Positions 2,254 through 63,030 of a stretch of 64,000 nucleotides of DNA are shown one piece after another. Where the stretch lies: the NCBI RefSeq assembly GCF_006345805.1, contig NW_021831284.1, positions 744,001 to 808,000 of the forward strand. Direction: 5' to 3'. A program made the translations under genes and the position numbers. Position 1 is the first letter of the stretch, and every line of letters starts with the position of its first letter. A model generated the notes under the pieces. It saw only the letters and a program-made list of their open reading frames with translations, did no database searches and was not told the DNA's origin. This DNA comes from Octopus sinensis. Its lineage: Eukaryota.

Positions 2254-2790
2254 CTAACTAATCTGTATAATTCTTTTCCTTTTTGGACCGTTGCACTGGA
2301 TCCGCGTATTCTCCTCCTCTAACACTTCATATGACACATGAGACACATCTTCCGGTAAATCTGGTGGATCTGTTGTTTCTCTAGCCAATTTTAGGAGGTG
2401 GTTGGTGGCCCTCGAAACTTGTTCCTCATGTTTTTCAATTTCCACTCCATGTTTGTGTTCAACAAGCATGGTCTCCAATGTCTTTTTAATTGTCAGCGAT
2501 TGTATATACTATCTAGTGGAGGCATCCAACTTGAGTCTTTCCATATAAGACTTATAGAATTTAGAAACTATCCCGTCCCATGTGAGGAGAATGGGGATTA
2601 TCGTTACCTTCGCACCGTGAGATAATTCTCCAGCAAGAAGATCATATTTATGCAGTTTTTCTACTTCCACTTGCTTTAACATGGCGTGAGAAGTAATTCC
2701 GACTTCAATTAGAGTGATTTCGTTTTATCAAGGACAAAGATATCTGGTCTATTGTTTTTTACATGAACATCTGTCTGCAAGGTGGTGGCC
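2254..2790 (-). mobile_element. R4/Dong-like non-LTR retrotransposon 3' fragment (restriction-like endonuclease)
   Basis: Frameshifted translation 'NRPDIFVLDK..ITLIEVGITSHAMLKQVEVEKLHKYDLLAGEL..IIPILLTWDGIVSKFYKSY...YIQSLTIKKTLETM' gives a PD..D/E..K RLE; it ends next to the Tigger at 2822. Confidence 0.75.
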
Positions 2791-2821
2791 ACTCTTATAA
2801 GTGTATTTAATAAAATAAATA

Positions 2822-4155
2822 CAGTATAACCTCCATTTGGGGCATCAATTTTGAAAATTGCCCAAAAATAGAGGTTTCCCCAAAAATGGAGGTCTGAAAT
2901 TTTCTTTATTTTTATAAAAATTTTAATAGTTTTAGCATATTTTTCATTAATTTATAAATAAATAAAGTATTTTTAAGAACATTTAAACATGTTTTCCACT
3001 AATTTTATTGATAATTAGAGTATTTTTCAAGTAGAAAAAAATTTTTATTCTATTATACACGAAAATAATCTGTTATTTTGTTTCCTGTTGCAGATTTCTT
3101 CATATGTATGCCCAATATTTTTCTGAAATTGTAATAGTCTTTTAACGCATCGGGAAACAAACGGTGAATATTCTCTTCAAGGTTATTCATTGCTGTTATC
3201 GTGTCCAAGTGTGAACAGTTGCATTCAGTTTGGTCATATATTGACTCATCATTATTTTCTTCTTCATTTTCAGCAATTACGTCTGCAATTATCGTGTCCA
3301 AATTTTCTTTCTCACTGTTAACTAAAAAATTTGAACTAGGAATCTGTTGCCGACAGTTATTAATTGTTTCCCAACAATTCGTTATTGTTTCAGGATTTAA
3401 ATTTTGCCATGTTTTTCCAACAATTATTATGACATGACGAAGATTTCAAGCGAAGAAACATCGGAAGAGTTTTTCTCTCCACTAATTGTCTTAAATGACA
3501 ACATATGTCTTTTCTTAAATTTTTCCAACCAGCCATTGGACCCTTTGAACGCCGAATAATTCAACATCCTTGCTACTTTGGAAGCAATATTTTTTAAAAG
3601 AGGACCGGACACAGGAATAAATTCTTCCCTTGTCTTGGTGAAAGCCTCAAAAACAATTTTATTATCCAATTTTTGGGATAAAGTATGAGGAGAGCGTTGA
3701 ATATTTCTGGGAAAATCTGTTTGAACAGCCCCAGTATTAAAAAAATTGAGATAATTTTTTTTAATACGTGACACCGCGCCTAAAAACTTACATTAATAAA
3801 AAACCTTTACTAATTTTGTACTTATCTACAATATCTCGTTCAGTAAGATGTTTATTTTCACTTAATTCCTTGGCAATTTTGATCTTTAACTCAAGACTAA
3901 GCTTACGAGCCATAACAACAAGAATACAAAAATTACACGAGGCTTCCAAATGAAATTTTATATAATTAATTTTAATTTTAATAGCAATATGTATATAAAT
4001 TAAAATCCTGTGCCCCACTTAGAGGTTCCGGTAATTTCTAAATTTGGAATTACCGCATAAAAATTATATCCTTTTCAAACTACCCCAAAATAGAGGTTTC
4101 CCCAAAAATAGAGGTTCCCCAAGCCAGAGGTCTGCCCCAAATGGAGGTTATACTG
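2822..4155 (-). mobile_element. Tigger/pogo DNA transposon, internally deleted
   Basis: TIR CAGTATAACCTCCATTTGGGGCA at both ends, TA duplications at 2820-21 and 4156-57; HTH 'RKLSLELKIKIAKEL' and CENP-B HTH 'PVSGPLLK...FKGSNGWLEKFKKRH'; DDE core missing. Confidence 0.93.
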
Positions 4156-4514
4156 TATAAACTAATCCATTTAACAAATATTTTTTGAAAATTAAAGGTT
4201 ATAAATAATATTAATATCGTATTCGCCTGCAAATCCATCACCAATCATAGAATTATTATTCACTACACTGGATATAGTGCACAAATGCATGAACATACAA
4301 CAAATTAGCAGAAAAAACATCCAGAAAAATTATGTACTAAACAAAATAATGATCGCGAGAAATGCTACGTAGAAGAGTCTACGTTGGTGAAATTAATTTT
4401 TAAATAAAAAACATATAAAATAAGCAAATAATTTTGAATATATGAATTATTCAAATCAATGAAATTTAATATTTAAACTAAATTGACATTTTTTTAATTA
4501 ATTTGTCAAAAATT

Positions 4515-5330
4515 CCGACTTAAACATGGAGGGATTATTGTCTTATTTCGAATAGCTTGAAAATCCAAAGACTAATATTTAATAAATAATGAATCACTTG
4601 AAAGAACGGATGAATTATAATTTCTTTGACTCCTCCCTTTGAATTTCCAAGACGGTCTGTTGGATTTTTTTTCAGAAGCTACAATAAAACATTTCTTATT
4701 TACAATATATAGAATATTATGAGTTATAAAATCTACATAATATGGAAAATCAATTTCTAAATGAATTATTTTTTCACCCACATTTAGGCCACAGAATGGG
4801 TACTATGTGAGTAGAATGCAAAATAATTAACTTTTCTGAATGACATCAAGTACAGACAGACGTTGAACGTCCAAAAATCAACAGATCTTGTGTATGGTAT
4901 GCATTTTATGATTTCGGGAGCCATGTAGCACCGGGTACCTTAATATTTATATATTCTTGAATCCCATTCCATTTTAGGTTTTAAAATACCAAAGTCAGCT
5001 AGTTTAGGATACCCTTCTGACCCCAGTAAAATGTTTTCAAGTTTTAAATCACTGCTGAATTATAAAAACGATTGTGCCTGTGAACTATGTTGTTTTCGTG
5101 AAGAAACGTAAGTCCCAGTAGAATGCACGCACCGTAAAATCTGCATAGCTTATCAGAGATTTGATTCTTCAAAACCAACGATTGTAAGTCTCCTCTTTCA
5201 ACTTACTCCATTACTATATGTGTATAATCCTACAAGTCTTATAAAATGGGATACAGGAAGATGGTAAACAAAAGTTCCATTTCCAAGGTCTTTAATTTTT
5301 GTAAAGTCACAAATGGTATTTCTAAGAAAA
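4515..5330 (-). pseudogene. AGC-group Ser/Thr kinase pseudogene (PKC/PKA-like)
   Basis: Spliced reading: 'KDLGNGTF' joined directly to 'VYHLPDYTHIVME*VERGDL...[50 protein letters not shown]...LLKKNPTDRLG..HPFFQSLDF'. The beta3 Lys and alphaC are missing and there is an in-frame TAA. Confidence 0.8.
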
Positions 5331-6728
5331 TAATATTTCAATTATTTACGCTTCCTGAGTATTTTTTGCAGAATAAAATTTTAATTTTAATGAAACTGGG
5401 CTTCTCTTTATAAAAACGTATGGAAAAATCATATTTTTCCTCCACCTGCCAAAGTAAATTTTGTAATAAATGGTAAATTATTAACCAATAAAAATAAAAT
5501 AATTGGGGACAACCATTCCACAATTTTTACTTTTAGTCAAAGCTTTGCAGAACCTAAACCCAAATAAACAAAACAAAATTTGAAATTGTGAAATAAATTC
5601 AATTTTTCTGAATAAACTGTTTCTTAATAAAGAACAAAATAATTAATATAAACTGTCGCATCCATAACTGGGAATATCGTCAAAACTCTGATAAATAAAC
5701 TAACATGATGTTCATTAATAATCAGAGTGAAAAATTATTTAATAATCTTGAAGAAATTCCCCCTTAAAAATTTTAGAAACCTATCAAATCTTTCAAGAGA
5801 ACGATTTGAATCATCACAATGATAGCTATAGTCAAGCAAGCACGGTAATGAAGCACTGGCAAATAGTACCAATGAATAAATACTGCTCATCTAATGAATA
5901 ACTCAAAATACAGTACCCGACAAAAAATTGTATTTTTTTTAATTTGTTAAAAGAAATTGTTTAAAAAAATCTAGTTATTATGTACTGGCTCGCAGGATTG
6001 AGAGACAATTCCCGCAAAAAACAGCCAGCGAGATCCTCTGAATAAGAAATATAAATTCCCTGGGATTTGTATTAAATCGACTTTTTTTCTTTAAAAATTA
6101 TAAATTAATATTTAAAAAATCCGCCCAAAAAATTTATTAGAAATATTTGGAGTCACTAGAAAATCTAGTTATGTCAATGAAATTTATTTTTAAGTCCTAA
6201 TTTCTAAGAAAACTTGAAGTTACGAGAAAATGAATAAAATATATTTAATTTCCGAAATAGTCATAATTTCTCTGATATCAATTATATTCATGAATAAAAT
6301 TTAGTTATTCGGAATCTTAAAAAATTAGATTAAACAACAAAAAGCTATCATTAAACGACAATCATCAAATATCAGCCCGCCCGTCGTTAATAATAATCAT
6401 ATAGCATCCAAAGACTAATCAAATCAATTACTATACTATACTATTTACTACCAATGAGATAACACCACTAAAACAAATAGACAACAAACTAACGTGTGAA
6501 AATGTTTTTTAATTTTAGATTATTTAAAATTAACAAATAATTAATTATAGTTTAAATATCTAAAATCTATTATAATTTGTGAAACTATTTATTTATGAGT
6601 GTTTTGCAAGTCGAACAAAATTGATCCAATTACACGAAATTCACAGATTGGAAATTTTAAACAAAATGTACTTTTTATCATATTCAATCTTCATGTGATA
6701 TTTGAATAATAAATAGTTTCTTAGCAAC

Positions 6729-8943
6729 ATGTCGTCTTATAGAACTGAAAGCATAATAAGAGATATAATAAAAGAAATATGCCAAAATTGTAGTGCAAAG
6801 TTAGTGACTGTGAGCGAAGCATTGGCTGCTTTCATGGTGATTTACTCATACATAAACAAACAGGTGAAATCAACAGTGCTCAACCCTGATAACAAATTAA
6901 ATCAAGTCCTATCCTCCACAGACATTGAGAATATAATAAATGTCTAAATATTCTATTACACCTAGATATGTGTAGAAAGATTGAGCGAGGATAAATCCGT
7001 ATCTCTCGATACAATAAAAATGCAAGTTTATTTCGACTTGAATTACAGTGAGAAAGGTTATTAGTCACTAAAACCTTGTAGATGAACTTATTCGCGAACA
7101 TCGTGCTTTGCTTGGAACAAGAATTCTTCCTCTCTACCAGGAAATAGCAGACAGTCGAGCAAGAACGAAAGATGAACTTAACCAACTTTATATGAAGATT
7201 GTATCCGCTACCGTGATCGGGTCAAGTCTTGGTGGAACTACGGAAATTCAGGTTTTGAGAGAAGCAACAGGTTTGGGTAATTATTTAACAAAATAGCTGC
7301 ACTTCAAAGCGTCTTTTCTGAATCTGAACTCCGAAATTTCACAAAAATGAAAAAGTCTGAAAAAATGAAACATCTTGACGAACTGACGTGTATTGTGGCC
7401 GGAATTAGAATATTTAATAAAGACTGTGGAAAAGGGGGGAAAACAATAAACAACGGTTTTTAATATTTATCAAATAATATAGTTCCTGCAATGTATTTCG
7501 GAGTTGTGGGTTCTCTGATGACTAGTATTGAGACTAGTATTAAGGAAACTGTTGATACATGTGATTATCTGACATGTGTAGAATTGGAAATAATATTTTT
7601 AGCAATTCTTGAGAGCCTGTATCATCGAGGAGAGGATAACACTTTGACAAGAGTACTTTCTGAGTTGGTAGTGAATTGCCGACAATATGAAATATATTTA
7701 AGTTTAATATTAGTAAATTTAATGTTCTAATTGAAAGAATGATGTGAGCAATTCAGCTAAATATATGACAGAATTGTATGAACAGCTCAAAAACACAGTT
7801 CAAGTATTGAGAAATGTGATTCAAGACAAAACTGCTGTCCCCACAGGACAAGTCTATGTATAGTTAGTTTGCTTATTCAAGCCACAATTCTTCTCCTTAT
7901 ATAACTACTGGAAAACTTTTCAGGAAGAATTAGTAGTCTTTGATTTGCATAAAACTATTTGGACACAATTGAACGAATTATTCAAGTTATTTTGACAAAA
8001 TTTAAATTTATAAGAATCGAAAGTCTTGGTCAGTCAACGAAGAGATACAAAATCTTGGAAAAGAAATAACTGTCCTCACAAATAAAGAACGAATTAAGGA
8101 ATAAATATTAATTAACGACAATAGACACCCCAAAACCATGAATTACTAACGCAACCTCAATATGACTGTTCTTTTAGAGTGGTGGACCCTCAAGAACATA
8201 ATTTTGAAAAACTGTCAGTCTATTTACAAGTAAATGTTACTAATTTGATGATTAGGGATTTTGTATAAATAATTTTGTGAAATATAATGGATTATTAATC
8301 CCTGCCAATACTGGTTTGGGGCTAATAGAATACAAAAATTTATTTTTTGGCTTTGCAAGCAAGCAGGATGCGGCAGAATTTTGTAAAAATATCAAATCGT
8401 ATAATTAAGGTCTAATTATTTAGAAATTTGATTAAAATCGGAAAATTTGCTGCGAAAAACCCAGAGTTTATTCACTTGCTTGACCTCCATTCATCCACCG
8501 AAGCCACCAACGCCAATTTAAATTCAACTGCGAATTTCCTCCAACCGACACTGAAAAAAGAATTCGGAATGCAGACTGATCTCCACCCCTATGAGAGTAA
8601 CATCGACCCAGACTATCAATGGAATGAATGGGAGTTGAGAAGACAAGCCATTAAATTGGTAATATTTTTGAAATTAATTAAATCAGGCTAATTTGAGAAC
8701 AAAGTTAACATGTTCAACTCAAACTGCTAAAAGTAATTTGAGAAGAGAAAATATAACCCAAACTTATCCACCAAAGTAATATGATAGCAATTATGTATTC
8801 CAAGGGAATTCGGAGTCCAAACAAAGGGAGATGGACAATCTAGTGTTCCCAAGCCGCAAACATTCTTGTCTGGACTTAGAGGGTGCAAGGACGTTAAAAA
8901 CGCGTTTTCTAAAATCGATTTGACACAAGAAATTGAAGAATAG
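6729..8943 (+). CDS. CFAP206: Cilia- and flagella-associated protein 206 (multi-exon)
   Basis: 'VTVSEALAAFMVKSTVLNP', 'KMQVYFDLNY', 'LYMKIVSATVIGS', 'QTDLHPYESNIDPDYQWNEWELRRQAIKLANL', 'VPKPQTFLSGLRG'; GT-AG introns e.g. 6837-6863, 6942-6965, 7057-7081, 7271-7296; stop TAG 8941-8943. Confidence 0.93.
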
Positions 8944-9068
8944 GATTAATTTTTGAGTAAACTAACCAATAAATAATAATTGTCGCGTCAATGATAAATT
9001 CAACTATTATTTTGAGTTCCATCATTCTTTCAGGTAAAAGAAACAATTTAACTTCCGGATTGCTTAAT

Positions 9069-10932
9069 TTTTTTTTTTTAAATTTTTCTTTTTTTCACAG
9101 AAACAAAACAATTGTCAGTTAACTAAATTAACCCAGCCGAACGGATTGCTTGCGCGTTCCCGCGCACGATTGCGAGCGAGATCCTCTGCCTCAACCAAGA
9201 GGACTCGCGAGCATCCATCTTCTTCCGAGCGATGAGGATACCGAGGTCTTTAACGAAGCATGAGGTCAGCGGACCGGAAGCGCCTGATGTCTCAAAAGCC
9301 ACAGGCACGAAGGAATGCCGAGTGGCAAGATTCTTGTACTTTTCTACATTGCGGGCTTCCGCCACGGCCGCGACCGAGCCGGAAGAAGAAGCAGATGACA
9401 GTAGAGCGGATGGGGACCACGTGTCTGCGCACGTGGCGTCCCAGATCAGGTAATTGCCATTTCGGAATGGGAAGGTAGTCATCCCGTCTGGGCGTTTGCC
9501 GTCCCCCCTGTCCAATCCAACTGGTTCAAGCACGTTGGGGAAGCCAGCAGCGTTGAGAGCTCTTGAGATAACGTCGTTGATTGCTCCATGGCGAGGCGAG
9601 CGGCCTGCGCTCCGGCGGCAGGAGAGGGGGTGAAGGCCTTTCACGTCCACCGTACCTCCGCATCGACAGGGATGAGAGGCGCAGACATCGAGCCCCAGCC
9701 GAAGAGCGACCCCGATGCGCAGTGTTTCGTTGTCCAATAGCGAACCCGTCGATAACGTTGGGTAAGCGTCGAGCCAGGATCCACTATGCTCGTGTGCTGC
9801 AGCAAACAAGCACCCTTGGCGGTGTTGGTCCAAAACCGGTTGGAGCGTAGAGAACGAGTGTGCTGCCCAGATCTCGTCCCAATCCCTCTGTCTGGACATC
9901 TCAGAAGGGATATGAAGTCCAGAGTTGGTCCAGAATTCCAGGAGGTCGACAGTTGACAACTCCAGGGAGAGTTCGTTGAAGTGGAGTAGAACCTCTCGGA
10001 CAGGTTGACGGCTTACAAGTTGACGGCTTCTGGAAATTGAAGAGAAATGTGCATGTGGCGCCAGATCTTTAGGCGAGCGAAGACCGATCAAGTTTAACAG
10101 CCACGTGAGGATGGAGTAGGGCATCCTTTGAGAGAAAGAGAGTTCGGGCCCCGTGTACGGCAGCTTCACAGTCGTTTGGGATCCCCGACTCCCAGTTGAA
10201 GTGGAGCTAGTTCGGTGCTGAGGCGTAGACTGACGTGTCGTGCGGCAGCTTTAGCGGCAAGCCGGCGGAACAAGTTGCCAACAGCGATCGGACGAATACC
10301 TCCGTCCTTTTTTCTGAATGCCAGTAGATGAGACGAGTAGCTTCGTAGCAAAATTCGGGATGTTCCCACTCAGCAACCGGTTTATAAGTGTGGTGATGGC
10401 AGTGAGTAGAGTTTGGCCTGCCTCGGCTGTCGTTTGGGAAATGAGGTCTTTTAGGTGCCCTGGGCGTAGTCCGTCCAGGCCCCCACAGCTGCTTTTCCCG
10501 AAAGATTGAATTGAGCGTTTGACTTCCTCGTTTGTTAGAGTTAGGACTGGAGTGTCTCTTGGGCGTTCGAAGGGTCGGAGGTCGACGGGAGGGTCTGGAT
10601 GTTTGGTTTTCAGTTTGTCGAGAACGTCGGGAGTTGGAAGTAAGACCGTGTCGTCGTTCATGACAGTGCGGATAGCAGCTCGGATGTCGCCTTCGACCAG
10701 CTTGCTACTGACACGTTCACTCAAGTTCCGCCCGGAGTTGTAGTCCGGGTTAGGGTGCTTGTTGTCATTCTTCGTGGGTTGTGTGAAGGACAAGTTTGCG
10801 GGAGAAGTCTTTGGTAGAGAGAAGATTTTGCTGATGTTCTGTTTGATTCGTGAGGAGAGAGGTTGTGGATTTTTTTCAGTGCGAATCTGAGTCCCGAGGG
10901 TCAGAGGGGCAAAGCTGATGAAGCGGGTCCAA
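9069..10932 (-). mobile_element. CRE-clade RLE retrotransposon (family A), 5'-truncated, RT core deleted
   Basis: 'GGLDGLRPGHLKDL', 'RPIAVGNLFRRLAAK', zinc knuckle 'CRCGGTVDVKGLHPLSC', 'KRPDG..LIWDATCADT', 'RQRISLAIVRGNA'; A-rich tail; candidate TSD CTTAAT at 9063-9068 and 10933-10938; sequence jumps from VKLD to GLRSP, deleting YLDD. Confidence 0.88.
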
Positions 10933-11031
10933 CTTAATAGACAATCAATCAAATAAAATTTGAATCAAGCATCTGGAAATAAGCAGACAATTGATTAATT
11001 CTACTTGCTATTAATTATTGTTAATAAATAT

Positions 11032-11090
11032 TTAATTAGCAGTAGAGGATAAGATTGAATGCCAATTCCCACGCAAAATTCTATGGAAAA
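11032..11090 (-). mobile_element. CRE 3'-end micro-remnant
   Basis: Translates 'ILRGNWHSILSSTAN*', similar to 'ILRGNYHSILYSAAN*' at 12326. Confidence 0.7.
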
Positions 11091-11666: not shown

Positions 11667-12025
11667 TTATCTTTGATTATCAAATCTAACACAGGAAATA
11701 AAAACGAATCGCTAATGATGTATATTATTTATTCATGAAATAATACATAAATAATAAAATATAACTTAATAAAAATAATTTATTATTAAAATGTAGTTTT
11801 GCCTTTTACTTGAACTTTTTGGTCCATACAAAGTAGTCCAGATGGCTGTAGTCTTGGGATATAGTAGTCTATTCGAAGGCACGTGACCAGACAATATCAA
11901 TCTGTAAAAATCGACTGTCGGTATACCTAACTCTTATGTGACGAATTTCTAATTTTTTGTATCGTTCTATACTGAATTTTGACTTTTTATGAAGTTTTAT
12001 TAATAAAAGGACTAGAGAGAAATGG

Positions 12026-12250
12026 TCATTGGCAGATAGCCAGAGTATTGCCTCTGACTATGGCTATGGATATTCTTTCGGTTAAATACTGGTGCTCACA
12101 CTAGTCGCCGGTAACTCTTTCATTAGTGAGCCAATCCGCAGGAGTAGGGTCCGAGTAGAAGTCCCCTGTATTCCTGACGTCTCAACAGCCAGAGGGACAA
12201 ACACTCTGCCATTCCAAATTCCAGCGTATTTCTCACTCTCTTGACTTTTT
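12026..12250 (-). mobile_element. CRE 3' fragment (family D)
   Basis: 'FVPLAVETSGIQG...HQYLTERISIAIVRGNTLAICQ*'; a near-identical copy lies at 62895-63030. Confidence 0.8.
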
Positions 12251-12325
12251 AAACTTTCGATGTTGTTTCATACAATTTTAATAGTTTTGATATTTGTGAT
12301 AATCAAAGAATTTGTTATTTAGTAT

Positions 12326-12656
12326 TTAATTAGCAGCAGAGTATAAGATGGAATGGTAATTCCCACGCAAGATGGCTATTGATATGCGTTGGAAAAGCCA
12401 TGTCCGTTCCCGATGATCATTTCTCCTTCTGCTTGCCAGGTCCCCCAGTTTAATAAGGAATTTTTTAGTTCTGGGACCGAGGAGTCCCGACGTCTCCACT
12501 GCGATCGGGGCAAAAGATTTCCGCAAGATTGACTTTTAATGTTTCCGCAAGGTTGGCTGCGGAGCCCGGCTGACGTAAAGATGTCTCCGGTGGAGAAGGT
12601 GTCCGTGCAAGTTGCGTCCCAGATGAGCGACTTGCCATTTTTGAAGGGGATAGTTT
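12326..12656 (-). mobile_element. CRE 3' fragment (family E), internally deleted
   Basis: 'IPFKNGKSLIWDATCTDTF' followed by 'FAPIAVETSGLLGP...WLFQRISIAILRGNYHSI'. Confidence 0.85.
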
Positions 12657-16347: not shown

Positions 16348-16529
16348 ATAAATAATTTGTTTTGATTTCGTATTTGGTTATTTTTTTAAAATGAAATTTT
16401 CTTCAGAAATTAATTATATACTTTTTGTACTTTATTTTAACCTTTTTTACTGTATTCTTTTTCTATTTAAATTTATAAAGATCTAGATACAGTTATTTGA
16501 TAAGAAATCATGATGATCAACAAAGGTGG

Positions 16530-18582: not shown

Positions 18583-18595
18583 TTTATTGTTATTA

Positions 18596-46895: not shown

Positions 46896-46904
46896 AGAAA
46901 GAAT

Positions 46905-50657: not shown

Positions 50658-50661
50658 ACAA

Positions 50662-53600
50662 TTTTTTTTTTAATTTATAAGTAAACGAAAAGAGTTAAAA
50701 TGCGCAGCGGATCGACTGGCAATTCCCGCGCATGATGGCCAATGAGATCCTTTGAAAGAGTCTGATCGACTCGTTGGGATCTTTCGTGGCAACCACGAGC
50801 TTAGATCCAAGGCGGCGGAGAAACGATAGCGTCTGCGGGCCGATGACTCCAGAGGTTTCCACCGCGACTGCAGTGAATTGGTGATTCTTTGCCAGGACCC
50901 GGTACTTCTTCTGTTTTGTTAGTTCCGCCTGCTTTGCAACTGAGCCCGGTTCCGCAGCGGAGGCAATTAGATTCTTGGCGGAGAAAGTGTCGGAACAGGT
51001 GGCGTCCCAGATAAGGCATTTCCCCTTTTCAAACGGGAAGATTGACATGCCATCCGGGCGCTTACCGTCGCCTCTGTCGAGCCCGACTGGTTCGAGCTCA
51101 TTAGGAAACCCCGCCGTCGTTAGGGCACGGCTCACGGTGTCGTTGATGGCGGCGTGTCGTGGGAAACGTCCGGCACTACGTGAGCAGGAGAGGGGATGAT
51201 GGCCAAATGAGTCCACTCTTAAACCGCAGCGGCACTGGTGTGTTCTGCAAATGGGAAGTCCGAGGCGGAGAGAGACGGAAATCCTTACACAGTCGTTGTC
51301 CATTAAGGTGCCGATTGACGCCATAGGGATTGCTGTAAGCCATGCACCAGAATATGGTTGCGAGGCGGCCAATAAGCAAGCCAAGCAATGTTGATTGAGT
51401 TTCGGCTTGAGGCTGTTTATCTTGTGGTCGCAGAGGATCCGGTCCCATTGGCCTTGAGCGTGTGTATTCTCCGGGATTTCCAGAGACATCCCTTGCCAGC
51501 AACTTTCTGCGGCGACCGACTCTGTGTCCATAGATGATTCGGTTACGGATTGGAGAATCTCCTGGACCAGATCGTTGGTCGCATTAACTGAAGATAAGTA
51601 CGCCGGGATAGAAAGGTCGACAGATGATCGGATACCAATACCGCCATGGCTTATAGCAGTGGTTCTCAACGGTGGGCGATTCGCCCCCTAGGGGCGATTT
51701 TTTTTGGTAGGTGGGCGATTTTTTCTGCCAGGGGGGCGATGGCTGATTGCTAATATTTGAAAAATTAAAATCTTATGTTAGAAGTTGATAATCTGTGAAA
51801 AAATAAAGATATATAATCGAGTCTAATAATATTTATTAATAATATGATATTTTTATTATATTTTATTTAAATTTCTAAGCGTGATTTCTAGTTATCTTTA
51901 TGGGTCGTGTTCAAAAAAAAGTCAGAATGTATAAAGATGAATATATTTCTCTTGGATTTATTAAAGATCCTCAAGATCCTAATAAACCACTTTGTCTTCA
52001 ATGTGGTACAATTTTTTCGAATGAGGCAATGACACCGTCTCGTTTGATTGAACATTTAAAGCGAAAACATCATAATTCAATTGGAAAAAAGCCAGACTTT
52101 TTTCTAGAATTAAAAAAGAATTTTGAAAATAAAAACACCTTACCGTCAATCTTTAATAAAAATATATCTTAAATTGTCTCTGGATTATCTTATTCATATA
52201 AAGTTGCAGAGATAATCGCAAAAACTGGTTGCATTATTATTTTAATTTATAGGTAATGCCCATTCGATTGCAGAAAATGTCATCCGTCCTTGTTTAAATT
52301 TATTTATAAACGATATCTTACAAAAAGATTCTTCAAATATTATGAAGACTATTCCATTAAGCAACGACACTATACAAAGAAGAATTGATGAAATTTCTAA
52401 TGAAATTGAACAATCTTTAATTTTATTTCTCAGAGAACGCAAGTTTTCAGTCCAACTTGACGAATCAGTTGTCGTTGATAATCAGTCAATTTTGATGGCA
52501 TATGTAAGGTATTACTTTTTATAAATACTTTTTATAAAGATATTTCGATGATGATTCTATTTTGCAAGAAGAGTTATTATTTGCAAAATCTTTAGTCACG
52601 GATACTACAGGATTGTCAATATTCAAAATGTTTGAATCTTATTTATTCTTAAATGATATTCCATTTGAACATATTTTATCGTGCGCAACTGATGGCGCAA
52701 TGGCTATGGTTGGAAAATATCGTGGTTTTTTAGCTTTTCTAAAACACAAATCTCCAATGTCCACTTCAATTCATTGTATTTTACATCGGCATCATTTAAT
52801 TGCAAAAAAATTATCTGAAGAATTGAATGCATCAATGTAATTGTTATCAAAGTTATCAATAAAATTAAAAGAAACAGAGCAAGTACGATCGTATTTTTCG
52901 TGAATACTGCACTAATCAAAATGAAGATTATGTTAGGTTACTTTTACATATCGAAGTAAGATGGTTATCCAAGGGAAATTGTCTTGAAAGATTTGTGATA
53001 TTATTTGATGCAATTGTTGATTTTTTAAGATTACAAGAAGAATTTAAATTGTTTAATTCCTGTAAAATTCATAAAAAAAATATTTTTTATTTTTACTAAT
53101 GAAATAAGGGGGCGATATAAAAATTGGAGGGGCGAAAAAAAATAAAGGTTGAGAACCACTGGCTTATAGGAAGGGTGGCCTTTTGCCAACCGATCTCATC
53201 AAGGGTAATATTGCAAATGGACTCCAAGCTGGATTTAAGCGAAAAATCAAATGATTCGAGAGCCCTCAGGTTAAAGAAACATGGGGCACTTCTGAGGATA
53301 AATAGAAGCTTTGGAATTGCAAAACAATTGCGTAGGAAAAACAGGCCGGAATGGGAATCGATTTTTGCTAGTTTGTTAGAAATTGCCACTAGCGAGGATG
53401 TTTTAGCATGTAGGGATGATTCAACACCCAGATTAGATATAGGAGACCCTAAGATTTTCAAATTTTCGATCAAGGTCCTGCGGATATTTGGAAGGACATT
53501 CGAGAACGTATTAAATACAGAGGTAAAATCTTCTGGGGTAAAGCCAATATTGGCAATTTCGGATTTGAGCGGATTGATGGATAGGCCAAGAGAATTAAGG

Positions 53601-55315
53601 GAGGGGATCAGATTTTCCAAATCTTTAAGGACAGAAGCTACCGGACCTCCGATAGTAGCGTCGTCAAGGTACCATACATTGAAACGAGATGAGATGTTCC
53701 GAACAACAGGATCGATCGTCAGGGCAAAAAGCAACGGGCCAAGTGAATCGCCCTGTTAAACACCGTTGCTGGGATTTGGTCATCGGCAATAAGAAGGCTT
53801 GGCTTGGAGTAAGCCATAGATACCAAGCGGGCAATTGAGGGAGCACGCCGGTAGCAAGTTTCGAGAATACAGTCCCGACGAAGACTGTTGAAGGCATTTG
53901 TCAAGTCTAGCTTCACGAGTACAGAGGCGTTATCCGGCCTTTCGGTTGAGGCGGAAATAAACTTTCTTGCAGCATGGACAGCAGCTTCACAGCCGCCGCG
54001 GACACCGACGCCCAACTGAAACGGGCGTAGTTCCTGACCCAAAGACTTGGTAACTTGTCTACAGGCTACTTTGGAAGCTAGGCGGCGAAAAAATGTACCA
54101 ACAGCAATAGGGCGGATCCCGCCTTCCTTCTTCCTCAATGCGGTGATGTTTGCAGGAAATAGAAGGTCCCGAGCGTACTGATCATGTTTGTCAGAGCAGT
54201 TATGGAGACGAGGAGCCGAGCGCCAGCCTCGCAAGTGTGGCTTGAGAGTAGTTTTTTCACATGCCCTGGGCGTAGTCCGTCGATGCCCCCGCAGCTGCCT
54301 GTTGCAAGGGAATTAATAGCATCTAGAACATCTTCTTTGGGGGCATAGGTTGCGGGGTAATCGGAATTTAAAGTAGTAAAGCGAAGGTCCGCGGGGGGAC
54401 TCGGATGTTTTGCATTAAGCTCAGCGAGGACACTTGGTGTAATGGAAAGAACTGAGTCATCAGATGATAAAACACGGACAGCGCTTGCAACATTTCCCTC
54501 CATCAGTTTAGTGTTGATCCTGTTCCGCAGGCGCAAAATGTCTTGGGCTTCTGGGTCTACGTTGCTACTTTGACTGGATTTTTTGACTTTATGCGTTGAC
54601 TGGGGCTTTGTTTCGCCCAGCCAGGCAGAAAAGTCATCATCAGGGCGATTTAGGTAGGCTGAGATGTTATGCTTAGAACGGTTAGAAATCGATTTTGGTG
54701 GGGAGTCCTCTCTGCGGAGGCCGAGAGCCATGACGCCAAAGCAGAAAAGATGATTCCAGGAGGCTGGGTCATTGGAAGTAATGGCTTTGTCGATGACTAT
54801 TGATAAAGAGTCTGCGGCAAGGATACGTGCGGCCTTCGGGATTTTGATAGGGATCGAGCGGCTTCTCTTGGCTTGTGCGACCGCCAAGAGGAAATCTTTT
54901 ACCGAGGGGGAAGAAATGATGGGCTGAGAGTGTGAATCTTTGGATGAGAATACCGGATGCGGGCTCAAGTTTAATTGGGTAAGGCAAGAGTGGCAACTCC
55001 ACTTCGACAGAGAAGCGGCGGCCAATTTAGGTATTCCGGCACAGGATTGATGGAAAAAAAGGTCACAGGAGGAGCAATGACAGCCGTTCTTCCTGGGGTT
55101 GTTAAGCATGCACGAAGTGCAGCAAAGCGACTTTTTAGAGAAACAGAGAGGCATGAGGAAAAAAAAGAAAAGTAGATTGAAACAATGACAAAGGATTAGG
55201 ACAATAGAATGGAACAATAGAAAGTACGAATTGAAATAATTTGAAAAATAAATTGGAATTACAAATAAATTGAAAAAAATTACACCACAACATTTAACGT
55301 GAATTTAAAATCACG
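50662..55315 (-). mobile_element. CRE family B, unit 2 copy
   Basis: Duplicate of 34841-39488 with the same TSD and the same nested hAT. Confidence 0.92.
51657..53161 (+). mobile_element. hAT/Buster nested in CRE-B (unit 2)
   Basis: Same TIRs and GCTTATAG TSD as 35835-37336. Confidence 0.96.
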
Positions 55316-55499
55316 CACGTACAATTATCGACGTACAATTATCGACACTTTCGAATTTTCTTGTTTGAAATTAACATTAATTTTGCTATTTGCACAACCA
55401 GAAACGAAATGCACCATGCTTCAATGGGACGCGTTTTGTATATCAAATTTAAGGCATATATACTGTCATTTGGTAGAAAATCAAACTGATAAAAAATGG

Positions 55500-58400
55500 C
55501 TTACTAGTGGTATTCGAAAATTTTTTCATAAAAGGAATTTAGTTTTAATAATTAGTTATGGATTTCTAAGTTGTTGTCCAATAAAAGCTTAAAATTCATT
55601 TAAAAACGAATAAATTATTCCGATACCGATAAAATTAACCAAATCCAAAGAATAAATTAAATTTCTAAATATCCATTCCATCAATTATAGCTTTTAGGAT
55701 GAATGCAGCCAGTTCTTCACTATTCCAATAATACACATGTGACAACAAATAACGTGAAAAATTATATTTTTGTTCACTGAGAGCATAGTCAAGACGAAAT
55801 TCGAGTCCTACAAGTTGAAGTTTATTTTATTACCTTCCGGAACAAGCGAGGTTTCTTCAATTCTTAAATGATCATAGAATGGAGAAAAAAATTCATATGA
55901 GTTCAGATGATCATTCCAACCTCGGTAAAAAATACAATCAGGTTTGATGACATTTCGATGAATGATATTCATGACTATTTTTTGTGTAACCACTTCTTTT
56001 AATATAACAGGGTTTATATTATAGAAAGCTCGGCAAAACAAAGGTTCCAACCGATAAGCCTATAAATACTTTAAATTAAAAATATTTCACTATGAAATCG
56101 CTTGGATAAAAAATGTTAAAAAGACGGTAGGGCATCCCATATTTGGGTAGAATATCTTCTTGTGTTGAAGAATCACGAACCGATTTTCCTCGGAGCATCA
56201 AAAACATGGAAAGTGGCGACCCAAGCATAAAAAAGTTTTTAATTTTGAGATCCAAAATTGAAGGTAAGAAAAGGTTATTTTTTAAAGATGGACAAATCCA
56301 GGTATCCCCTTCCGTAATGAGGTCATAAACGATCAGAGAGCCTAAATTTAAAATAACTTCAACTGATTATACCTAGAGAATGAGCTACAATTGATATATC
56401 CGGAAGATTTGTTTTTTTGTTTTTTCTGTATTCGACAAAAAGCGAATACAATCGTGATAATTCAGTTGTTAATTTCTCAATAATCTATGAATATCAAAAA
56501 ATTAAAATGACAACTTTGGCTCTAAAATAAGAACTTGTGTAGTATAGGATGTCAAGAACAGAGTTGTTAATAAAATTACGGACATTTATATTTGAAGATG
56601 GCATTAAAACATCTAATATATCTAAAAGGAGATTAAATTTTATTAAAAAAACTTTCTCCCAATTCGACTGTGCGCCAATTCACTGGCATTAGTTCAATTA
56701 CTGCGTTTTTATTATTGGCCAGATATGTTACACTAAAAATTCATATAAATAGAAATAAAAACTTTTAAAATAAAAATTAATACAAAGCATAACCTAATTG
56801 TTCGCAAAAATATGCTTTTCTGAATAGAAAAAATTTGGACTGAAACATGAATTTTTTCCCAAAAACCAACATACCGTGTAAAATATGAGTTTTAAATTAT
56901 TTAGCAATCTATTAATTTTGGCTTATCCATATCTTTTTTTTATTAAATAATTATTCTTTTTTTTTAAAAAAAAATTTTAAAAGCCTCTTATTAGTTTAAA
57001 ACGTTTTCTATCAAGGAATCACAAAAAAGAAGGATCATTCCCAATTTTAATTAAGCGTGAAACATGTATTTTCTCATACATGTCACCTGTCTCACTTTGT
57101 ATTGTTACTACAAAATCGTCTTTTGCCACAATTGTGTATTTCACCATCTCTAATCCATCATAAAGTGGATATTGTCGTTTGTTAGCGTCATTATCTTGCC
57201 TAAATTACATGTTTATACATCCCAAATACCTTAAGATTACTATCTCTCCTACACTAAAAGTAGCCTCGTCATACTTCCATTTTCTTCTCTGAGCCATTTT
57301 ATCAGCTGCCAACAGAATATTTACATACGCTTCATTCCTTTCCTCTTCCAAATATTCTATGTCATCATTTTGCAATAACAATGATTCTAGTTCCTCCTCT
57401 GATGTTTCAATAGGATATTTTATGCCCATAAATAGATTAAATGGGACTTTTTTTGTGGTGGAATGGACAGTATTGTTATAATCAAAAACAATGTCTTTGA
57501 TTATATCGCAATAGCGTCCAAAACATTCATCAGAGTAACTTTTAGATGAAATCCATCTTTTGATACTCTGATTTAGTCTAAAGAATAATGTTATCTTACA
57601 ACCTTTCCACCTGTCCCTGTACCCAAGGAGCCCTTGGTCGTCCACGGACATGTTTAATTTTGTACTTTTCACATAAACGGGCGACATGGTCATTGCAAAA
57701 TTCTTTACCATTGTCTGTATGCAAGATCAATGGTGGCCCAATATAATAAAAGATGTTCTGAAATAACGAAGCAATTTCATGAGCTCTTTTGGTAAAAGAT
57801 AACTCAACTATCGCGAATTTCGAAAAAGAATCGACAATTACAAGAATCTAATCTTTATATAGCCAAAAGTACCCAGTTATAAGAATCATTAATATCTGAA
57901 TATCTCCTTAGGTCCACTAAATCGGCGATATACCGATCGCGACTCCGCCTTGCAATGATCGGCGTAACTGGGGGTTTAGTAGCCAATGATTTTTTTGACT
58001 AAAAAATTAATAAAAAAAACTTAAAACCTGGCAAGGAATACATCGTTTTATGACACGATTGATCTCTGCACGTGATATTCCGTGGTATAAGCGCGCCAAT
58101 TTTGAAAACAACCGGTCTCGACCAAAATGATTCAAATTATGTTCAGCCAATTGAAATAAACATTTATTATGCAAACTTCAATATATTTATCTTTAAGTTC
58201 AGCTTCATCGCTGCAGAAAAATCTTAATTTAAGTCCATCTTTAGTGATATATGGAGCTCCATCCAAAAAATCAAATTTATTTGCTAATTTCAGTAGTCTT
58301 GATCTTTGCATCCGCGAAAGCGTCCTGCTGACGAATACGAGCTCAGGATTGCTCTTAAGTTCCTTAAGTAATTCTAAGTCTTCCTTTGTTACTTGCACTA

Positions 58401-59088
58401 AACGCATTTTTAACGTGTATTTGTAATTTAAAAAAACATCAATATTTTTTAAAAATTTATAAGTTTTCTTTGATTTCATAGAAATATACCAAAGGATTCA
58501 TGTTTTAAGTTTTTTCCAACTTGACATTTTGATGTTGGTGTAACACATCTGGCGGAGTAACAGTTGTGGCCGGTGACAGATGATATAAAGTTTTCGATTT
58601 TTTAAAAATTAATTAATTTTAATTATCTTCAAAAAAAAACTGCGACCACTTCGACAAAAGTACCGGAATATTTCATTTCTGATTTCCACTTAACTGTATA
58701 TTCTTCAAGGATTAGTGGCTCTAAGATTGGGGAGATAATAAATACTTTTATTTGTCGAGGCGTACATCTCGTAGTAATAGGGATCTATTTGTTCAGCTAG
58801 CGATTCAGATATGGGCTCATATTTAGGATAGGTAAACCAAGTTCCACGGATAACTTGAAACCATGATTCTTCAAATATAAATAAATCGTATTTGCCTCTA
58901 TCGTATATTGGAAAGCATCTCCGGTCGTGTAAATTAACCACAAAAATTCCGTGACGAACTGTTACTTCTTTCAATTCCTTGCCACTTCTGTATTCTTTTT
59001 CAAGACGAGTTGTATCATAGCTTCCAAATTTAAAGAAAGAACCGTTTTTTATGTAAAACCAGCGAACTTGCTCCATTAACTGGGTCAT
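55500..59088 (-). pseudogene. DDHD1: DDHD phospholipase copy 2, disrupted by a Ginger-like element and an adjacent deletion
   Basis: Largely colinear with 16530-18582; the segment equivalent to about 17845-18120 is missing beside the insertion. Confidence 0.78.
56718..58553 (-). mobile_element. Ginger-like (retroviral-integrase-type) DNA transposon with introns
   Basis: H2C2 'HFGRDRLF..RCIPCQ'; rve 'RYIADLVD..IVDSFSKF..LHTDNGKEF..GRPRAPWVQGQVERLNQ'; 16-bp inverted ends GCCAGAT(A/G)TGTTACAC; three tiny introns; no LTR or RT. Confidence 0.8.
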
Positions 59089-59732
59089 AAAATAATGTTA
59101 AATGGCGATAAATTAATTTAAAAACCAAGAATGGCGTTTCTAGTTCGTCGGGGCTGTTGCGATCACGAAAGAGTTATGCGTACAATCGCAAGGGATATTC
59201 GCTCAAAAACCATCTCGATTTGCGTGCGTTGCATGTAAATGTAGAAATCTTGACTTTGAAATTTACAAAATTATGTTAATTTGATATTCATTAACATTGT
59301 TGAATAACATTGACTGGTGGCGGCTAGCACTCAGGTGGGCATTAGGCTCGCGACATTTTATTAATCAAAATGAAGAGGTTAGTTGACTAGTTTGGTTATT
59401 AGCAGATAGTCAGGGTATTAATTCTGATTATAGACAAAGAGGCTCGCTTGGCCAGAATGGGTAACCTTTTCCATAACACCAGATGTATTGAAACAGGCTT
59501 CGAACAGAAAGTAACTGGTTTTTTTAATTTTAATTGGGAAATGTTTTTAATTCACTCAAATTGTATTTTTGTTATTTTAAAACCCAACCATAAGGCAGGG
59601 ATTATTTATAGCTATAGATTTCAAAATACCGATTTTCTGACTATTAGAATACTATTCAACAAAATACAAAGAATACTGAGTTGTTTAAAAATATCGATGA
59701 TTAAAAATATTAAATAACCATAAAAATTTAGT

Positions 59733-61252
59733 TCAGATGTCACTTGAATCAAGTCTGTAAATTTTGTACTGATCTCCGTATTCGGTAGTTGCAATCTCGA
59801 AAATGCAGCCAAAACATAAGAGGACCTCTCCTGAATGTATATCTTTAATTATCTATATCAATTAGATTAAAATATAATTGTTTATCACATTAAGAACTGA
59901 AAAGTATTCAAGAAATAAATTCTTTTCCATTAAATTATATTTTTGAAGCTGGAACATGAACTTGGATAGATATTCGTGGAATTCTTCGTTAATGGAATAG
60001 TTGAAGTTTGAACAGCAATATTCTGCAACAGGAATCTTATATTTTAGTCACTAAATTCGACTACTGATCTAGAAGACGCCATTTCATTGCCAAGAGAATA
60101 GACTTTTGTAATAACCTCAATGTTCATATTATCCGATCCAATAAGCCTGAAAATATGATATAGAAAATATTGCTCACGTCATATTCCATAAAAATTTTGA
60201 ATAAATCGCATCTAATTCCACATTGAAGTTAATCTAGCTTTGTTTATTCCATTTTTAGTCATATACCCAAAATTTTACTAAATAAAATGCATTTTCTGGG
60301 CCTTGCCGAAACATCATCGCATAATTTGGAGAAAATTTGTCTGTAATTTTATTCAGATTAATTTTCTAATAAATATATTACTAAAAAATCGATAAACTTC
60401 ATAAATGAAATCACAGGTGGATTCTATCCGTGAGAAAATGTGTTTTTGTGTCGATATAAGCTTTAAGATAATTAAATTAAATATATACGCCTGATTGATG
60501 ATTTTCAGTTTCACAAAATACGTAATAACTTTGTAATCTCAACCTCACGCCGTTAAAACCTCCTACAAAAAGATTGTGCTGCATAAAATAGTTCATCGAA
60601 GGTTCATATCGCAAAGGTGTTTGGTTAGAAGATGAATTTCTGAAAATTTATAAATTTGTTCAAGATTTACTGAAATTGAGACTGTTGATTCGTTGATATA
60701 ATCTATAAATATTTAGATCCAAACATTTACATTATTAGAAGGAAAATGAAAAGATTTTGAACATGACATTTTTGATTCGTCTGGAACGAAATATTTCGTG
60801 CTAAATGGACGTGATGCTTCGAACGAAGAATCAGAAGAGTAACCAATCTTTTCTTTGTTTTTAATAAAGTTCTTAATTTCACAGTATATTTTAGATATAC
60901 GTCTCTTTTTTTCATTCGACGATTTATCACTTGGATATGACTCGATACTTGTTTCCGAGTACGAGTCTTGCCAGTTTTTTCATGTATATATCGAGCAATA
61001 AGTTCATTTCTACCTAATAACATGTTAGATATAAAATAACTAACCAAACATTTTTCCCTCATTAGCAAAAACTATCTTCCTTCTCCCACATGGAGGATAT
61101 ATATTTAAGGCATCTTGAAAAATTTTGTCAATGTCGGCAGACCACACTCCTTCAGCAATCGTATCGTCGTCATTAGAATTCATTCTTAGTTGATTGTTTT
61201 CGGAGATTTCATTTTTTTTGTTAAGCCTTCCAAAATCATTCCAGTTTTGCAT
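59733..61252 (-). CDS. TEAD: TEAD/Scalloped transcription factor (TEA domain + YAP-binding domain)
   Basis: '[33 protein letters not shown]|[25 protein letters not shown]' with a 31-nt intron; C-terminal 'ITKVYSLG', '[10 protein letters not shown]', '[19 protein letters not shown]'; stop 59733-59735. Confidence 0.92.
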
Positions 61253-62894
61253 TTCAAATCTATTATAAATAAATATACTTGTTAATTTTGTATTCATAAA
61301 TTAATAACATTAGCCATTCATTAACATTTATTTTTTAAAAAAAGACTAGCCTACTTGAATATATAAAAACGAACTAATCTAGAACAATCTATCTTTTAAT
61401 GTAAAAAATTTGCGGAATTCATTGAATCAATTAATAAAATTGTTAACAAAAAATATTGACAGTTAACTATTCTATTGCTCAACGTAATCAATATTGTTTT
61501 TCTCTAAAGATTTGCTACTTATTAGACTAAGCACAATAATTAATAAGCATAAACTCAACTAGGATAGAAGAAATGAATTTTTACTTTAACCCAGTAACCT
61601 AAATACCTCAAAATAGAAATAGCTGATTATGAAAATATAAAACCATAAAACAAATATTTTTGATAACTATAGGGTATAATAATATGATTAAGATAAATAA
61701 GGAACCCATGATTGAAAATCAACCGAATAGTCCTAAATTAACAAAATCCGATTTTATAATGCTCGAAAAACCAAAAATTCCTAGCATAACTTAGAAATTT
61801 ATTGATATAATTAATTCAATTAAAATCTGTTATATTAGGAATATAGAATAATATTTAGGTAGTTTAAAGTTTAAATAATGGATTAATGCAGGAATTAAAC
61901 AAACTTTATAATTTAATGCAACAAAAATTCGAAAACAGGAACTAATAAAAAATTCAGTAATTTAACTAGCTTGTGGTTGCTCTATTGCTTATCGCAAACC
62001 ACAATTAACCTTTAATTGCAGAAAATTAATTTAAAGCGCCGAATGTTAAAAATAGATTTTTATTTCTGTAGACTTACGAAGTCGTTTTTTCTCAGAAAAT
62101 TGATATTAGTTAAAACTTTGATGGTTCATCTTTGGTGATTTTTGTATCTTTTGTCAATGCAGACATAATTTATAAATTGAAATATTCACAAACATAACAG
62201 AAAAGGCTGTGAAAAACCAGTTTTTCATGGATTGTTACTCCCTGAGATAATAAAATTTTTTTCTGATGAGGCATGACACTAATGTAATGAAACTAGATGT
62301 CTCCACAGAAAAGATTCAAAGATAAGGCGATTCATCAGTCATCTATACTTTTTTCCTTTTATTTTCGGTTTAATTTAGCAAATCCCGTGTACCAGACTGA
62401 ACCTAAGAAGTTCCTGCATGTGAAGGTGTCTGAGCACGAGGCGTTGTAACAAAAACTACTTATCGCTTAATTAGAGAAAAATTGTGCTTTTATCGGGACT
62501 TTTTCCTATTATCCAGACAGAGAGACTCTAAAAAATCTTTCAATTCTAAAATACGCGGGACAAGTGATTTCCCGAAATTGTGGTCAGTTTCAGGACCTGT
62601 ATAAATTATTAAATTTGAATCTCTAATGGATACTATGAATACTTTACAATATGCAGACTAGATGTATTTTAAGAAACAGCCTAAAATGCAAAATTACTTT
62701 ATTTTTCATGATATTCTACAAGATTAATTGAAATTTAATTCTTTAATTAACTAAATAGTGAATTGACAACCTTTGATCACAAACTGAAATAAAGTTCATT
62801 AAATACAATTTAGCGAAAACGAAAAACCTAGAAAAATTGCCAAGATAGTTGATAAAATAGATTATTAATATTTATTTATTAATAAAAAGACAAG

Positions 62895-63030
62895 AGAAAA
62901 ATCGTCATTGGCAGATAGCCAGAGTATTGCCTCTGACTATGGCTATGGATATTCGTTCTGTTAAATACCGGTGCTTACACTGGTCGCCGGTAACCCTTTC
63001 GATTAGTGAGCCAATCCGCTGGAATTATTA
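62895..63030 (-). mobile_element. CRE 3' fragment (family D, second copy)
   Basis: About 90% match to 12020-12140; 'TERISIAIVRGNTLAICQ*' with a TAAA-type tail. Confidence 0.8.

Follow-up and report, generated by a model that had tools for sequence, protein, structure and literature searches.

We found that, in a 64,000-bp stretch of DNA deposited as Octopus sinensis (RefSeq assembly GCF_006345805.1, contig NW_021831284.1, positions 744,001 to 808,000; hereafter the window, numbered from its first nucleotide), retrotransposons lacking long terminal repeats (LTRs), that is, non-LTR elements, lie almost entirely on the minus strand. With duplicated copies counted once, 14 insertions are on the minus strand, namely, nine CRE-like elements, one R4-like element, three long interspersed nuclear elements (LINEs) of the type encoding an apurinic/apyrimidinic endonuclease (APE), and one short interspersed nuclear element (SINE), and a single candidate at the right edge is on the plus strand (two-sided binomial p = 0.00098). 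Between 9 and 63 kb, all 12 non-LTR insertions are on the minus strand over about 54 kb. This same-strand skew is real and unusual. As to its cause, we tentatively favor a strand bias acting mostly at the stage of insertion and inflated by ascertainment, and weigh against it a cluster producing PIWI-interacting RNAs (piRNAs), pure chance, non-independent insertion, and retention in a giant intron.

Strand distribution of transposable elements

Both strands of the window were annotated by Pfam scans of stop-to-stop open reading frames (ORFs) of at least 80 amino acids (at least 45 in the flanks), by tblastn of the window with 120 proteins from the database that are related to the CRE-like protein, and by a profile hidden Markov model built from 40 CRE-like relatives and run against every window ORF of at least 30 amino acids. 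The window proteins were also searched against 1.84 billion representative proteins. "CRE-like" is a convenience label taken from the original prediction on this DNA, and assigns the elements to the class with a restriction-like endonuclease (RLE) without placing them in the CRE clade proper. The non-LTR features are listed below, with RT denoting reverse transcriptase and units 1 and 2 the two copies of a tandem duplication.

2257-2951, minus: R4-like (non-CRE) RLE-type 3' fragment; 94% amino acid identity to P0483
5950-6097, minus: CRE-like 3' end, 5'-truncated; profile match to positions 942-973, E = 6e-6
9070-10990, minus: CRE-like A, N-terminal part and RLE, RT region internally deleted, poly(A) tail; RLE ORF, E = 1.8e-120
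11010-11080, minus: tiny CRE-like 3' end of the f1 family, directly 5' of A; 48 nt at 90% identity with the 3' end of f1
11996-12255, minus: CRE-like f2, 5'-truncated; tblastn and profile
12310-12660, minus: CRE-like f1, 5'-truncated, about 55-75 bp upstream of f2; tblastn and profile
14144-16450, minus: APE LINE-2 (Exo_endo_phos and RVT_1); Pfam
20266-21072, minus: APE LINE-3, 5'-truncated, C-terminal part of ORF2; 86% amino acid identity to P0361
21340-22024, minus: CRE-like C, RLE part, starting 56 bp past the stop codon of a dynein gene piece; profile, E = 1.9e-91
28267-30062 (copy 43773-45532), minus: CRE-like D, N-terminal part and RT, 3' half lost; Pfam RVT_1, 1.9e-15, and profile
31100-34830 (copy 46900-50650), minus: APE LINE-1, gag-like CCHC ORF1, APE, and RT; Pfam
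34840-39495 (copy 50660-55320), minus: CRE-like E, near full length, PHD finger, RT, CCHC and RLE; Pfam, tblastn, and profile
45716-46043, minus: SINE of 328 bp with a putative tRNA-like head and an (ATT)n tail; site occupied in unit 2, with the matching empty site of unit 1 at 30239-30250
62875-63019, minus: CRE-like h of the f2 family, 5'-truncated, with flanks unlike those of f2; 92% to f2 over 145 nt, profile E = 4.5e-8
63664-64000, plus: pair of LINE-like ORFs running off the window edge; weak match (E = 0.03) to the N-terminal part of the LINE-2 RT ORF

All nine CRE-like insertions are independent and on the minus strand, two of them (D and E) having been duplicated with the units, and no RLE or RT match was found on the plus strand either with the 120 references in tblastn or with the 40-sequence profile on ORFs of at least 30 amino acids. 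All features listed in the original prediction were recovered on the strand that it gave and at or close to its positions. It had counted 13 of 14 insertions on the minus strand with p of about 0.002; that figure holds (p = 0.0018) and becomes slightly stronger with the present count. The strand that it gave to eight CRE insertions was correct, but their number rose to nine by tblastn and the profile. Its R4 fragment was recovered at 2257-2951, its three APE LINEs were borne out by Pfam and database relatives, and its SINE by the filled and empty sites. For its only plus-strand LINE, placed at 63660, LINE-like ORFs were indeed found on that strand, but their identity as a LINE is weak.

As it was the skew that drew attention to the window, the p-values are post hoc. 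Some of the elements are also closely paired, four pairs being separated by about 0-120 bp (under random placement, the probability of at least three such pairs is 0.006-0.03), and when each adjacent pair is collapsed to one event, 10 of 11 insertions remain on the minus strand (p = 0.012). The skew extends to the smallest pieces: six fragments of 70-400 bp (5950-6097, 11010-11080, f1, f2, h, and the SINE) are all on the minus strand (p = 0.03). At least nine families are represented among the insertions, which fall into at least two time layers: D, E, and LINE-1 precede the duplication and the SINE follows it.

The DNA transposons, which served as an internal control set, comprise the following.

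170-328, plus: hAT end
3056-3792, minus: Tigger
19012-20124, plus: Tigger
about 30500-30760, plus: Tigger
25629-26976, minus: hAT, in unit 1 only
35835-37330, plus: hAT nested in E
41085-42597, minus: Tc1-like element of 1.5 kb with 200-bp inverted ends and a TA target-site duplication, in unit 2 only
57208-58100, minus: integrase element

Thus, four are on the plus strand and four on the minus strand, the same mixture as originally described (hAT +, -, +; Tigger -, +, +; Tc1 -; integrase -), and the difference between 14 of 15 retroelements and 4 of 8 DNA transposons gives p = 0.04 by Fisher's exact test. The integrase fragment (57208-58500, minus; H2C2 and rve domains) stands in for about 300 bp of DDHD gene copy beta. 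Clear terminal inverted repeats are lacking, as is a neighboring RT, and from its domains the fragment may belong either to a Ginger DNA transposon or to an LTR element; it is on the minus strand whichever applies. As to strand-linked features of the DNA itself, the two strands carry equal numbers of AATAAA between 9 and 63 kb (94 each), and the 12 kb of unmasked DNA has AT and GC skews close to 0.

Features of the retroelements

The CRE-like elements are RLE-bearing non-LTR retrotransposons of the R2 group. RVT_1 was detected by Pfam in D and E, and the relatives of the CRE-like protein all carry it. In 40 aligned CRE-like proteins, C856, H868, C872, D916, D932, and K962 are invariant (CCHC and PD..D/E..K), the profile can be aligned with R2 structures 9nl3 and 9dou over the stretch from RT to RLE (E = 1e-24), and its N-terminal part matches PHD fingers. 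The Pfam scan of the window gave no Exo_endo_phos (APE) match in the CRE-like ORFs. Single-sequence searches of the PDB with the CRE-like and R4-like proteins gave no match, the 40-sequence profile being needed. Some CRE-like relatives bear extra domains (USP ubiquitin hydrolase, OTU, Ulp1, SAP, PHD, and a nuclear-receptor zinc finger), and the N-terminal domain repertoire of the group is varied.

The C-terminus encoded at 5950-6097 (...IQRISLAVFCGNCLSILRAST, followed by the stop codon) aligns with those of the other CRE-like copies and is followed by an A-run. Element E has a poly(A) tail and a target-site duplication of about 10 bp, AATTGTACGTG, and contains the plus-strand hAT at 35835-37330. 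The f1 DNA is 84% identical to the focal element of L001, one of the related loci described below. No shared motif beyond AT-richness was found in the flanks of E, A, C, f1, f2, h, 11010-11080, and 5950-6097, and the target-site duplication of E was not seen at other CRE-like copies in the window; site-specific RLE insertion is therefore ruled out. Element D is joined in frame to the dynein stalk exon, and a 495-residue open frame (27958-29442, minus) fuses the CRE-like RT to this microtubule-binding stalk exon (Pfam RVT_1 and MT). Since D lacks its 3' half, this fusion is a rearrangement junction and not a normal insertion. For the R4-like fragment, the longer relatives (P0472, P0511, and P0515) carry RVT_1 and no APE domain, their C-terminus being the matching part; a PD..E..K-like motif was read directly in the fragment, and the CRE-like profile gives no match to it.

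Among the APE elements, the full-length relatives of LINE-3 carry Exo_endo_phos and RVT_1, and LINE-3 itself matches the C-terminus of LINE-1 weakly. The B box (GGTTCGAATC) and an A-box-like stretch (TGGTGCAGTGC) of the SINE were read directly from the sequence; ARAGORN and Rfam made no tRNA call on the SINE and found no RNA genes in the window. A 65-nt stretch of the SINE body (45909-45971) is 85% identical to L001:18342-18406, which may be either a further copy of this family or a core conserved among SINEs. The LINE-like ORFs at 63664-64000, the only plus-strand non-LTR candidate in the window, have no Pfam match; directly 5' of them lies a microsatellite, (TTTGTCGATGTG)x8, at 63535-63629.

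Comparison with related loci

As a baseline, eight loci of 21-23 kb from Octopus-labelled contigs, each centered on an RLE element, were annotated using the references already applied to the window; they appear to come from the same or a sister genome. Neighbors of the focal elements were on the same strand in 20 cases and on the opposite strand in 15 (57%), which is not different from 50% (p = 0.5). The original prediction had raised the possibility that typical windows are equally skewed. This was not the case within this small baseline: the most skewed locus reached 5:1, whereas the identical pipeline gave 0 plus-strand and 10 unique minus-strand intervals in the window. Thus, relative to a baseline that is small, the window is atypical (p of about 0.001, or 0.012 with pairs collapsed). 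If the 57% of the baseline is accepted as it stands, it fits a strand bias of about 0.69 for each element, and at a bias of about 0.7, some 3-4% of windows (about 0.035) would reach 14 of 15. In L001, RLE copies at 8669-9025 (minus) and 9214 (plus) adjoin in opposite orientation; co-orientation is therefore not inherent in how RLE elements insert.

Segmental duplication and host gene fragments

Self-comparison revealed a tandem segmental duplication of 15.8 kb, with unit 1 at 23966-39820 and unit 2 at 39816-55648, which are about 98.7% identical; it is a recent enlargement of the region. The duplication junction falls within a dynein exon (directly after ..EYEDVPYSAIKY), which is fused there to a 214-bp piece that also borders both DDHD fragments. 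After the duplication, unit 1 alone received the hAT at 25629-26976 (8-bp target-site duplication; empty site 42960-43020), and unit 2 alone received the Tc1-like element at 41085-42597 (empty site 25235-25243) and the SINE at 45716-46043. In addition, 536 bp corresponding to 27767-28302 of unit 1 were lost from unit 2, taking the CRE-dynein junction with them. Only these units and the DDHD pieces are duplicates within the window. A deeper duplication behind the co-orientation was considered and rejected, A, C, D, and E being only about 50% identical in protein sequence and the flanks of f2 and h being unrelated.

The host gene pieces assigned to definite intervals are as follows.

4538-5890, minus: kinase
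6717-8688, plus: CFAP206; Pfam FAP206, 1.5e-15, and PDB CFAP206 alignment reaching residue 574 of 640
about 16459-18606 and about 55434-59097, minus: DDHD-domain gene fragment, copies alpha and beta, 87-96% identical
22080-28299, minus: axonemal dynein heavy chain, 3' third, from stalk to C-terminus; Pfam, introns of about 26 nt

Pieces of a gene for an RRM protein and of one for a TEA-domain (TEAD-type) protein also lie on the minus strand. The minus-strand placement of the kinase, dynein, and DDHD pieces in the original prediction was confirmed by Pfam, and its statement that most host genes are on the minus strand stands, but it had overlooked CFAP206, the only plus-strand host gene, which has introns of 25-27 nt and ends about 400 bp ahead of element A. 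The kinase and CFAP206 are arranged head to head, with the CRE-like fragment 5950-6097 in the short spacer. Partial copies of one CFAP206 exon (..NNFVKYNGLL.PANTG..) occur on the plus strand at about 16500-16700, 39700, and 55500; these pieces sit in a segment of 214-250 bp that is present three times and edges the duplicated blocks.

The dynein piece is cut at its 5' end, where the CRE-like RT runs in frame into the stalk exon, and is broken up by the hAT and by a fourfold repeat of an exon piece. This repeat (22492-23076) consists of four tandem 146-bp copies, 99% identical, from the C-terminal exon, and breaks the frame because 146 cannot be divided evenly by 3. The idea that the dynein piece is a processed pseudogene or a template-switch chimera, prompted by ORF pieces that overlap in different frames, is ruled out by GT-AG introns of 25-32 nt. 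The DDHD pair is older than the 15.8-kb duplication, and the lipase core is absent from both copies; all larger retroelements carry frameshifts or truncations. Because the dynein piece is cut and interrupted, the DDHD copies lack the lipase core, and the larger retroelements are frameshifted or truncated, the region is a graveyard of dead transposable elements and broken gene copies, not of working genes.

Source of the DNA

The window is most likely dicyemid DNA, as are the related Octopus-labelled contigs, to judge from introns of 25-32 nt together with transposon copies up to 98% identical to Octopus sinensis contigs. Dicyemids are parasites in octopus kidneys, and myxozoans are not known to be associated with octopuses. 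The dynein piece has GT-AG introns of 25-32 nt, with frame-compatible introns of 25-29 nt at most dynein junctions and at all CFAP206 junctions tested. Among animals, such introns are known only in dicyemids and myxobolid myxozoans (PMC13644364; PMC6543705); the median intron is 27 bp in Dicyema sp. (PMC6543705), and a dicyemid mean of 38 bp has been given (PMC6736024). An origin from Hydra, a planarian, or a cephalopod is ruled out by the intron lengths. The GC content of the window, 37.8% overall (about 30% in the background and 45-52% in the inserts), may be set beside 36.7% in Dicyema japonicum, which has a 67-Mb genome with 49% repeats (PMC6736024).

As to the transposon copies, one Tigger shares 98% DNA identity with a contig in the assembly of Octopus sinensis (GCA_006345805.1), and two transposon ORFs are 86% and 94% identical in amino acids to RefSeq proteins of that assembly, in which contig L011 likewise shows introns of about 26 nt (L011:6712-7737). 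The dynein identity to database proteins is at most 60% and uninformative, none of the matches listed being longer than 2001 amino acids. Several contigs labelled Octopus sinensis and the corresponding RefSeq proteins (e.g., XP_029654863, XP_029654692, and XP_029654314) look like parasite contamination. A practical by-product concerns database hygiene, namely, RefSeq entries labelled Octopus sinensis that look like parasite DNA.

Possible origins of the strand skew

We tentatively favor, short of holding it established, the view that the skew comes mostly from a strand bias at the stage of insertion, inflated by ascertainment. Target-primed reverse transcription (TPRT) would favor one DNA strand across a domain polarized in one direction, and ascertainment would then enlarge the skew, the window having been picked for being skewed; the co-orientation would be a neutral by-product at a locus without a dedicated function. 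We infer a TPRT-specific origin from the contrast between 14 of 15 co-oriented retroelements and 4 of 8 DNA transposons. A cause at the insertion stage is further suggested by the independence of the skew from length, since fragments of 70-400 bp offer little to select on; by its reach to the left of CFAP206, where 2257-2951 and 5950-6097 lie among minus-strand genes; by its persistence across time layers, before and after the duplication; by the plus strand lacking a transcription-linked signature (symmetric AATAAA and nucleotide skews of about 0); and by the mild co-orientation of neighbors in the related loci (20 versus 15). Indeed, L1 TPRT needs a structure typical of a primed lagging-strand template and strongly prefers it (PMC12503042), and replicative and transcriptional strand asymmetries are known for L1 and SINEs (PMC10030826). 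TPRT coupled to replication or transcription, the second option of the original prediction, fits the controls a little better than the first, a piRNA cluster.

Several considerations weigh against this preference. The link to replication is putative, being drawn from the DNA sequence, and no nucleotide skew hinting at unidirectional replication was seen in the 12 kb of unmasked DNA. The bias needed, if chance contributed nothing, would be at least 0.8, above the mild co-orientation of the baseline, itself indistinguishable from 50%. Most of the elements are of the RLE type, for which replication coupling is not documented, and coupling to the transcription of minus-strand genes would oppose the usual antisense bias. 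Finally, with a true probability of 0.5 for each element, a window like this would arise about once in 1000, which would favor a locus-specific cause such as a piRNA cluster.

A flamenco-type uni-strand piRNA cluster, or transposon trap, on the plus strand is a possible but rather doubtful explanation. A long plus-strand precursor, perhaps produced by read-through from CFAP206, would be processed into piRNAs antisense to the retroelements, so that antisense insertions would be kept and sense insertions with terminators lost. The hallmarks of piRNA clusters are strand-specific small RNAs of 24-32 nt with a 5' uridine (1U) and a long precursor transcript; they are not readable from DNA, and the sequence therefore cannot decide between a cluster and an insertion bias. 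The run of 12 minus-strand insertions at 9-63 kb is made up of dense, nested, dead copies of many families, with hAT, Tigger, Tc1-like, and integrase elements beside the non-LTR families, a hAT inside E, and E beside the 5' end of LINE-1, as would befit a trap; the density, nesting, and variety, however, do not discriminate, because the baseline loci show them too. Also in favor of a cluster are the atypical skew of the window relative to those loci, the position of the end of CFAP206 just ahead of A, the first co-oriented element downstream, and the duplication of the locus, as for flamenco in Drosophila simulans (PMC10495008). It would likewise suit a cluster that Dicyema japonicum is reported to have four Piwi-like genes and two piRNA-type (T3) Tudor genes (PMC12147562, Supplementary Table 2); the drastically reduced genome of the parasite would have kept Piwi-like genes and, by one survey, has no Ago-like genes.

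The DNA transposons speak against a cluster, since a 4:4 division has a probability of 0.046 under an 80% bias and of 0.27 under 50%. Moreover, the co-oriented elements 2257-2951 and 5950-6097 lie outside any unit starting at CFAP206, where a plus-strand precursor is unlikely, and an apparently ordinary minus-strand TEAD-type gene piece lies within the interval. The symmetry of AATAAA between the strands and the sharing of the skew by the very short fragments point the same way. The fuller proposition, that this would be the first piRNA cluster in Dicyemida, flamenco-like, fed by CFAP206 read-through, and loaded almost solely with non-LTR elements mainly of the RLE type, is slightly more doubtful still. 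If the skew does mark a piRNA source, it would provide an entry point to transposon control in dicyemids, in a 67-Mb genome that is half repeats.

Pure chance, that is, independent coin flips with the window as an extreme draw among about 1000 windows of 64 kb in a 67-Mb genome with 49% repeats (PMC6736024), is unlikely. In its favor, with p = 0.001 and several hundred transposon-rich windows, about 0.5 such windows would be expected per genome, the p-value is only 0.012 after collapse of adjacent pairs, and co-orientation in the baseline is not significantly above 50%. Against this, the skew appears in every subclass (9 of 9 CRE-like elements, 3 of 3 APE LINEs, the SINE, and the R4-like element) and across time layers, and none of the eight baseline loci goes beyond 5:1 with the same pipeline.

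The two remaining explanations, non-independent insertion and a giant plus-strand intron, are improbable even when taken together. Co-oriented head-to-tail arrays would result if RLE elements chose one specific site or inserted at the 3' tails of earlier elements, which we regard as very improbable here. Three or four close pairs (11010-11080 with A, f1 with f2, E with the 5' region of LINE-1, and possibly C with LINE-3) would fit, as would the target specificity of most RLE clades (PMC4640811) and the clustering of Alu elements in direct orientation (PMC10030826), but the 3' flanks of eight copies have no common motif beyond AT-richness, the paired elements belong to different families, adjacent RLE copies lie on opposite strands in the related locus L001, and 10 of 11 remain after pair collapse. 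A plus-strand host gene whose intron or transcription unit was very long might have retained antisense insertions; this would parallel the preferentially antisense LINEs and SINEs of mammalian genes (PMC10030826), but is close to excluded because introns are ultra-short (about 26 nt here and 38 bp on average in dicyemids (PMC6736024), which makes an intron of 55 kb implausible) and no plus-strand exons were found at 9-63 kb by Pfam ORF scans; the symmetric AATAAA also argues against it.

Comparison with known systems

Whether it comes from an insertion-stage bias or from a piRNA cluster, the skew would add one more case to a type already known, and at present it stands as a well-documented oddity, not a discovery. 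The CRE-like elements resemble the RLE non-LTR elements of the R2 group (CRE, R4, NeSL, and HERO clades) in having RT followed by CCHC and a PD..D/E..K endonuclease without APE, but differ in the lack of target-site specificity over nine insertion sites and in the N-terminal PHD finger. Head-to-tail clusters of Alu and LINE elements likewise consist of closely spaced, directly oriented non-LTR copies, whereas the neighbors here are from different families and related loci have both orientations.

In flamenco, the somatic uni-strand cluster of Drosophila, 79% of transposable elements are antisense, mostly Ty3/mdg4 LTR elements, and the locus is duplicated in Drosophila simulans (PMC10495008). 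Likened to it from its DNA, the window shares a graveyard of transposable elements, nested dead copies, a strand bias of retroelements, and duplication of the locus, but only its non-LTR elements are biased, its DNA transposons face both ways, and two co-oriented elements lie outside the putative unit. Core clusters fed by read-through are described in mosquitoes (bioRxiv 10.1101/2022.08.22.504762). Compared with them, the window is alike in that the putative precursor would start just past plus-strand CFAP206 with antisense inserts behind it, and different in that read-through here is putative, being suggested by the position of the gene.

The insertion-stage bias that we prefer may be compared with the bias of human L1 toward the lagging-strand template and with replication direction. 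The differences are that the elements of the window are mostly of the RLE and not the APE type and that the effect needed exceeds the co-orientation of the baseline. The two are alike in being specific to TPRT, independent of length, and sparing of cut-and-paste transposons, and in spanning domains of tens of kilobases; if the skew here is likewise TPRT polarity, runs of orientation could be used as a sequence-only proxy for fork direction where replication is unmappable.

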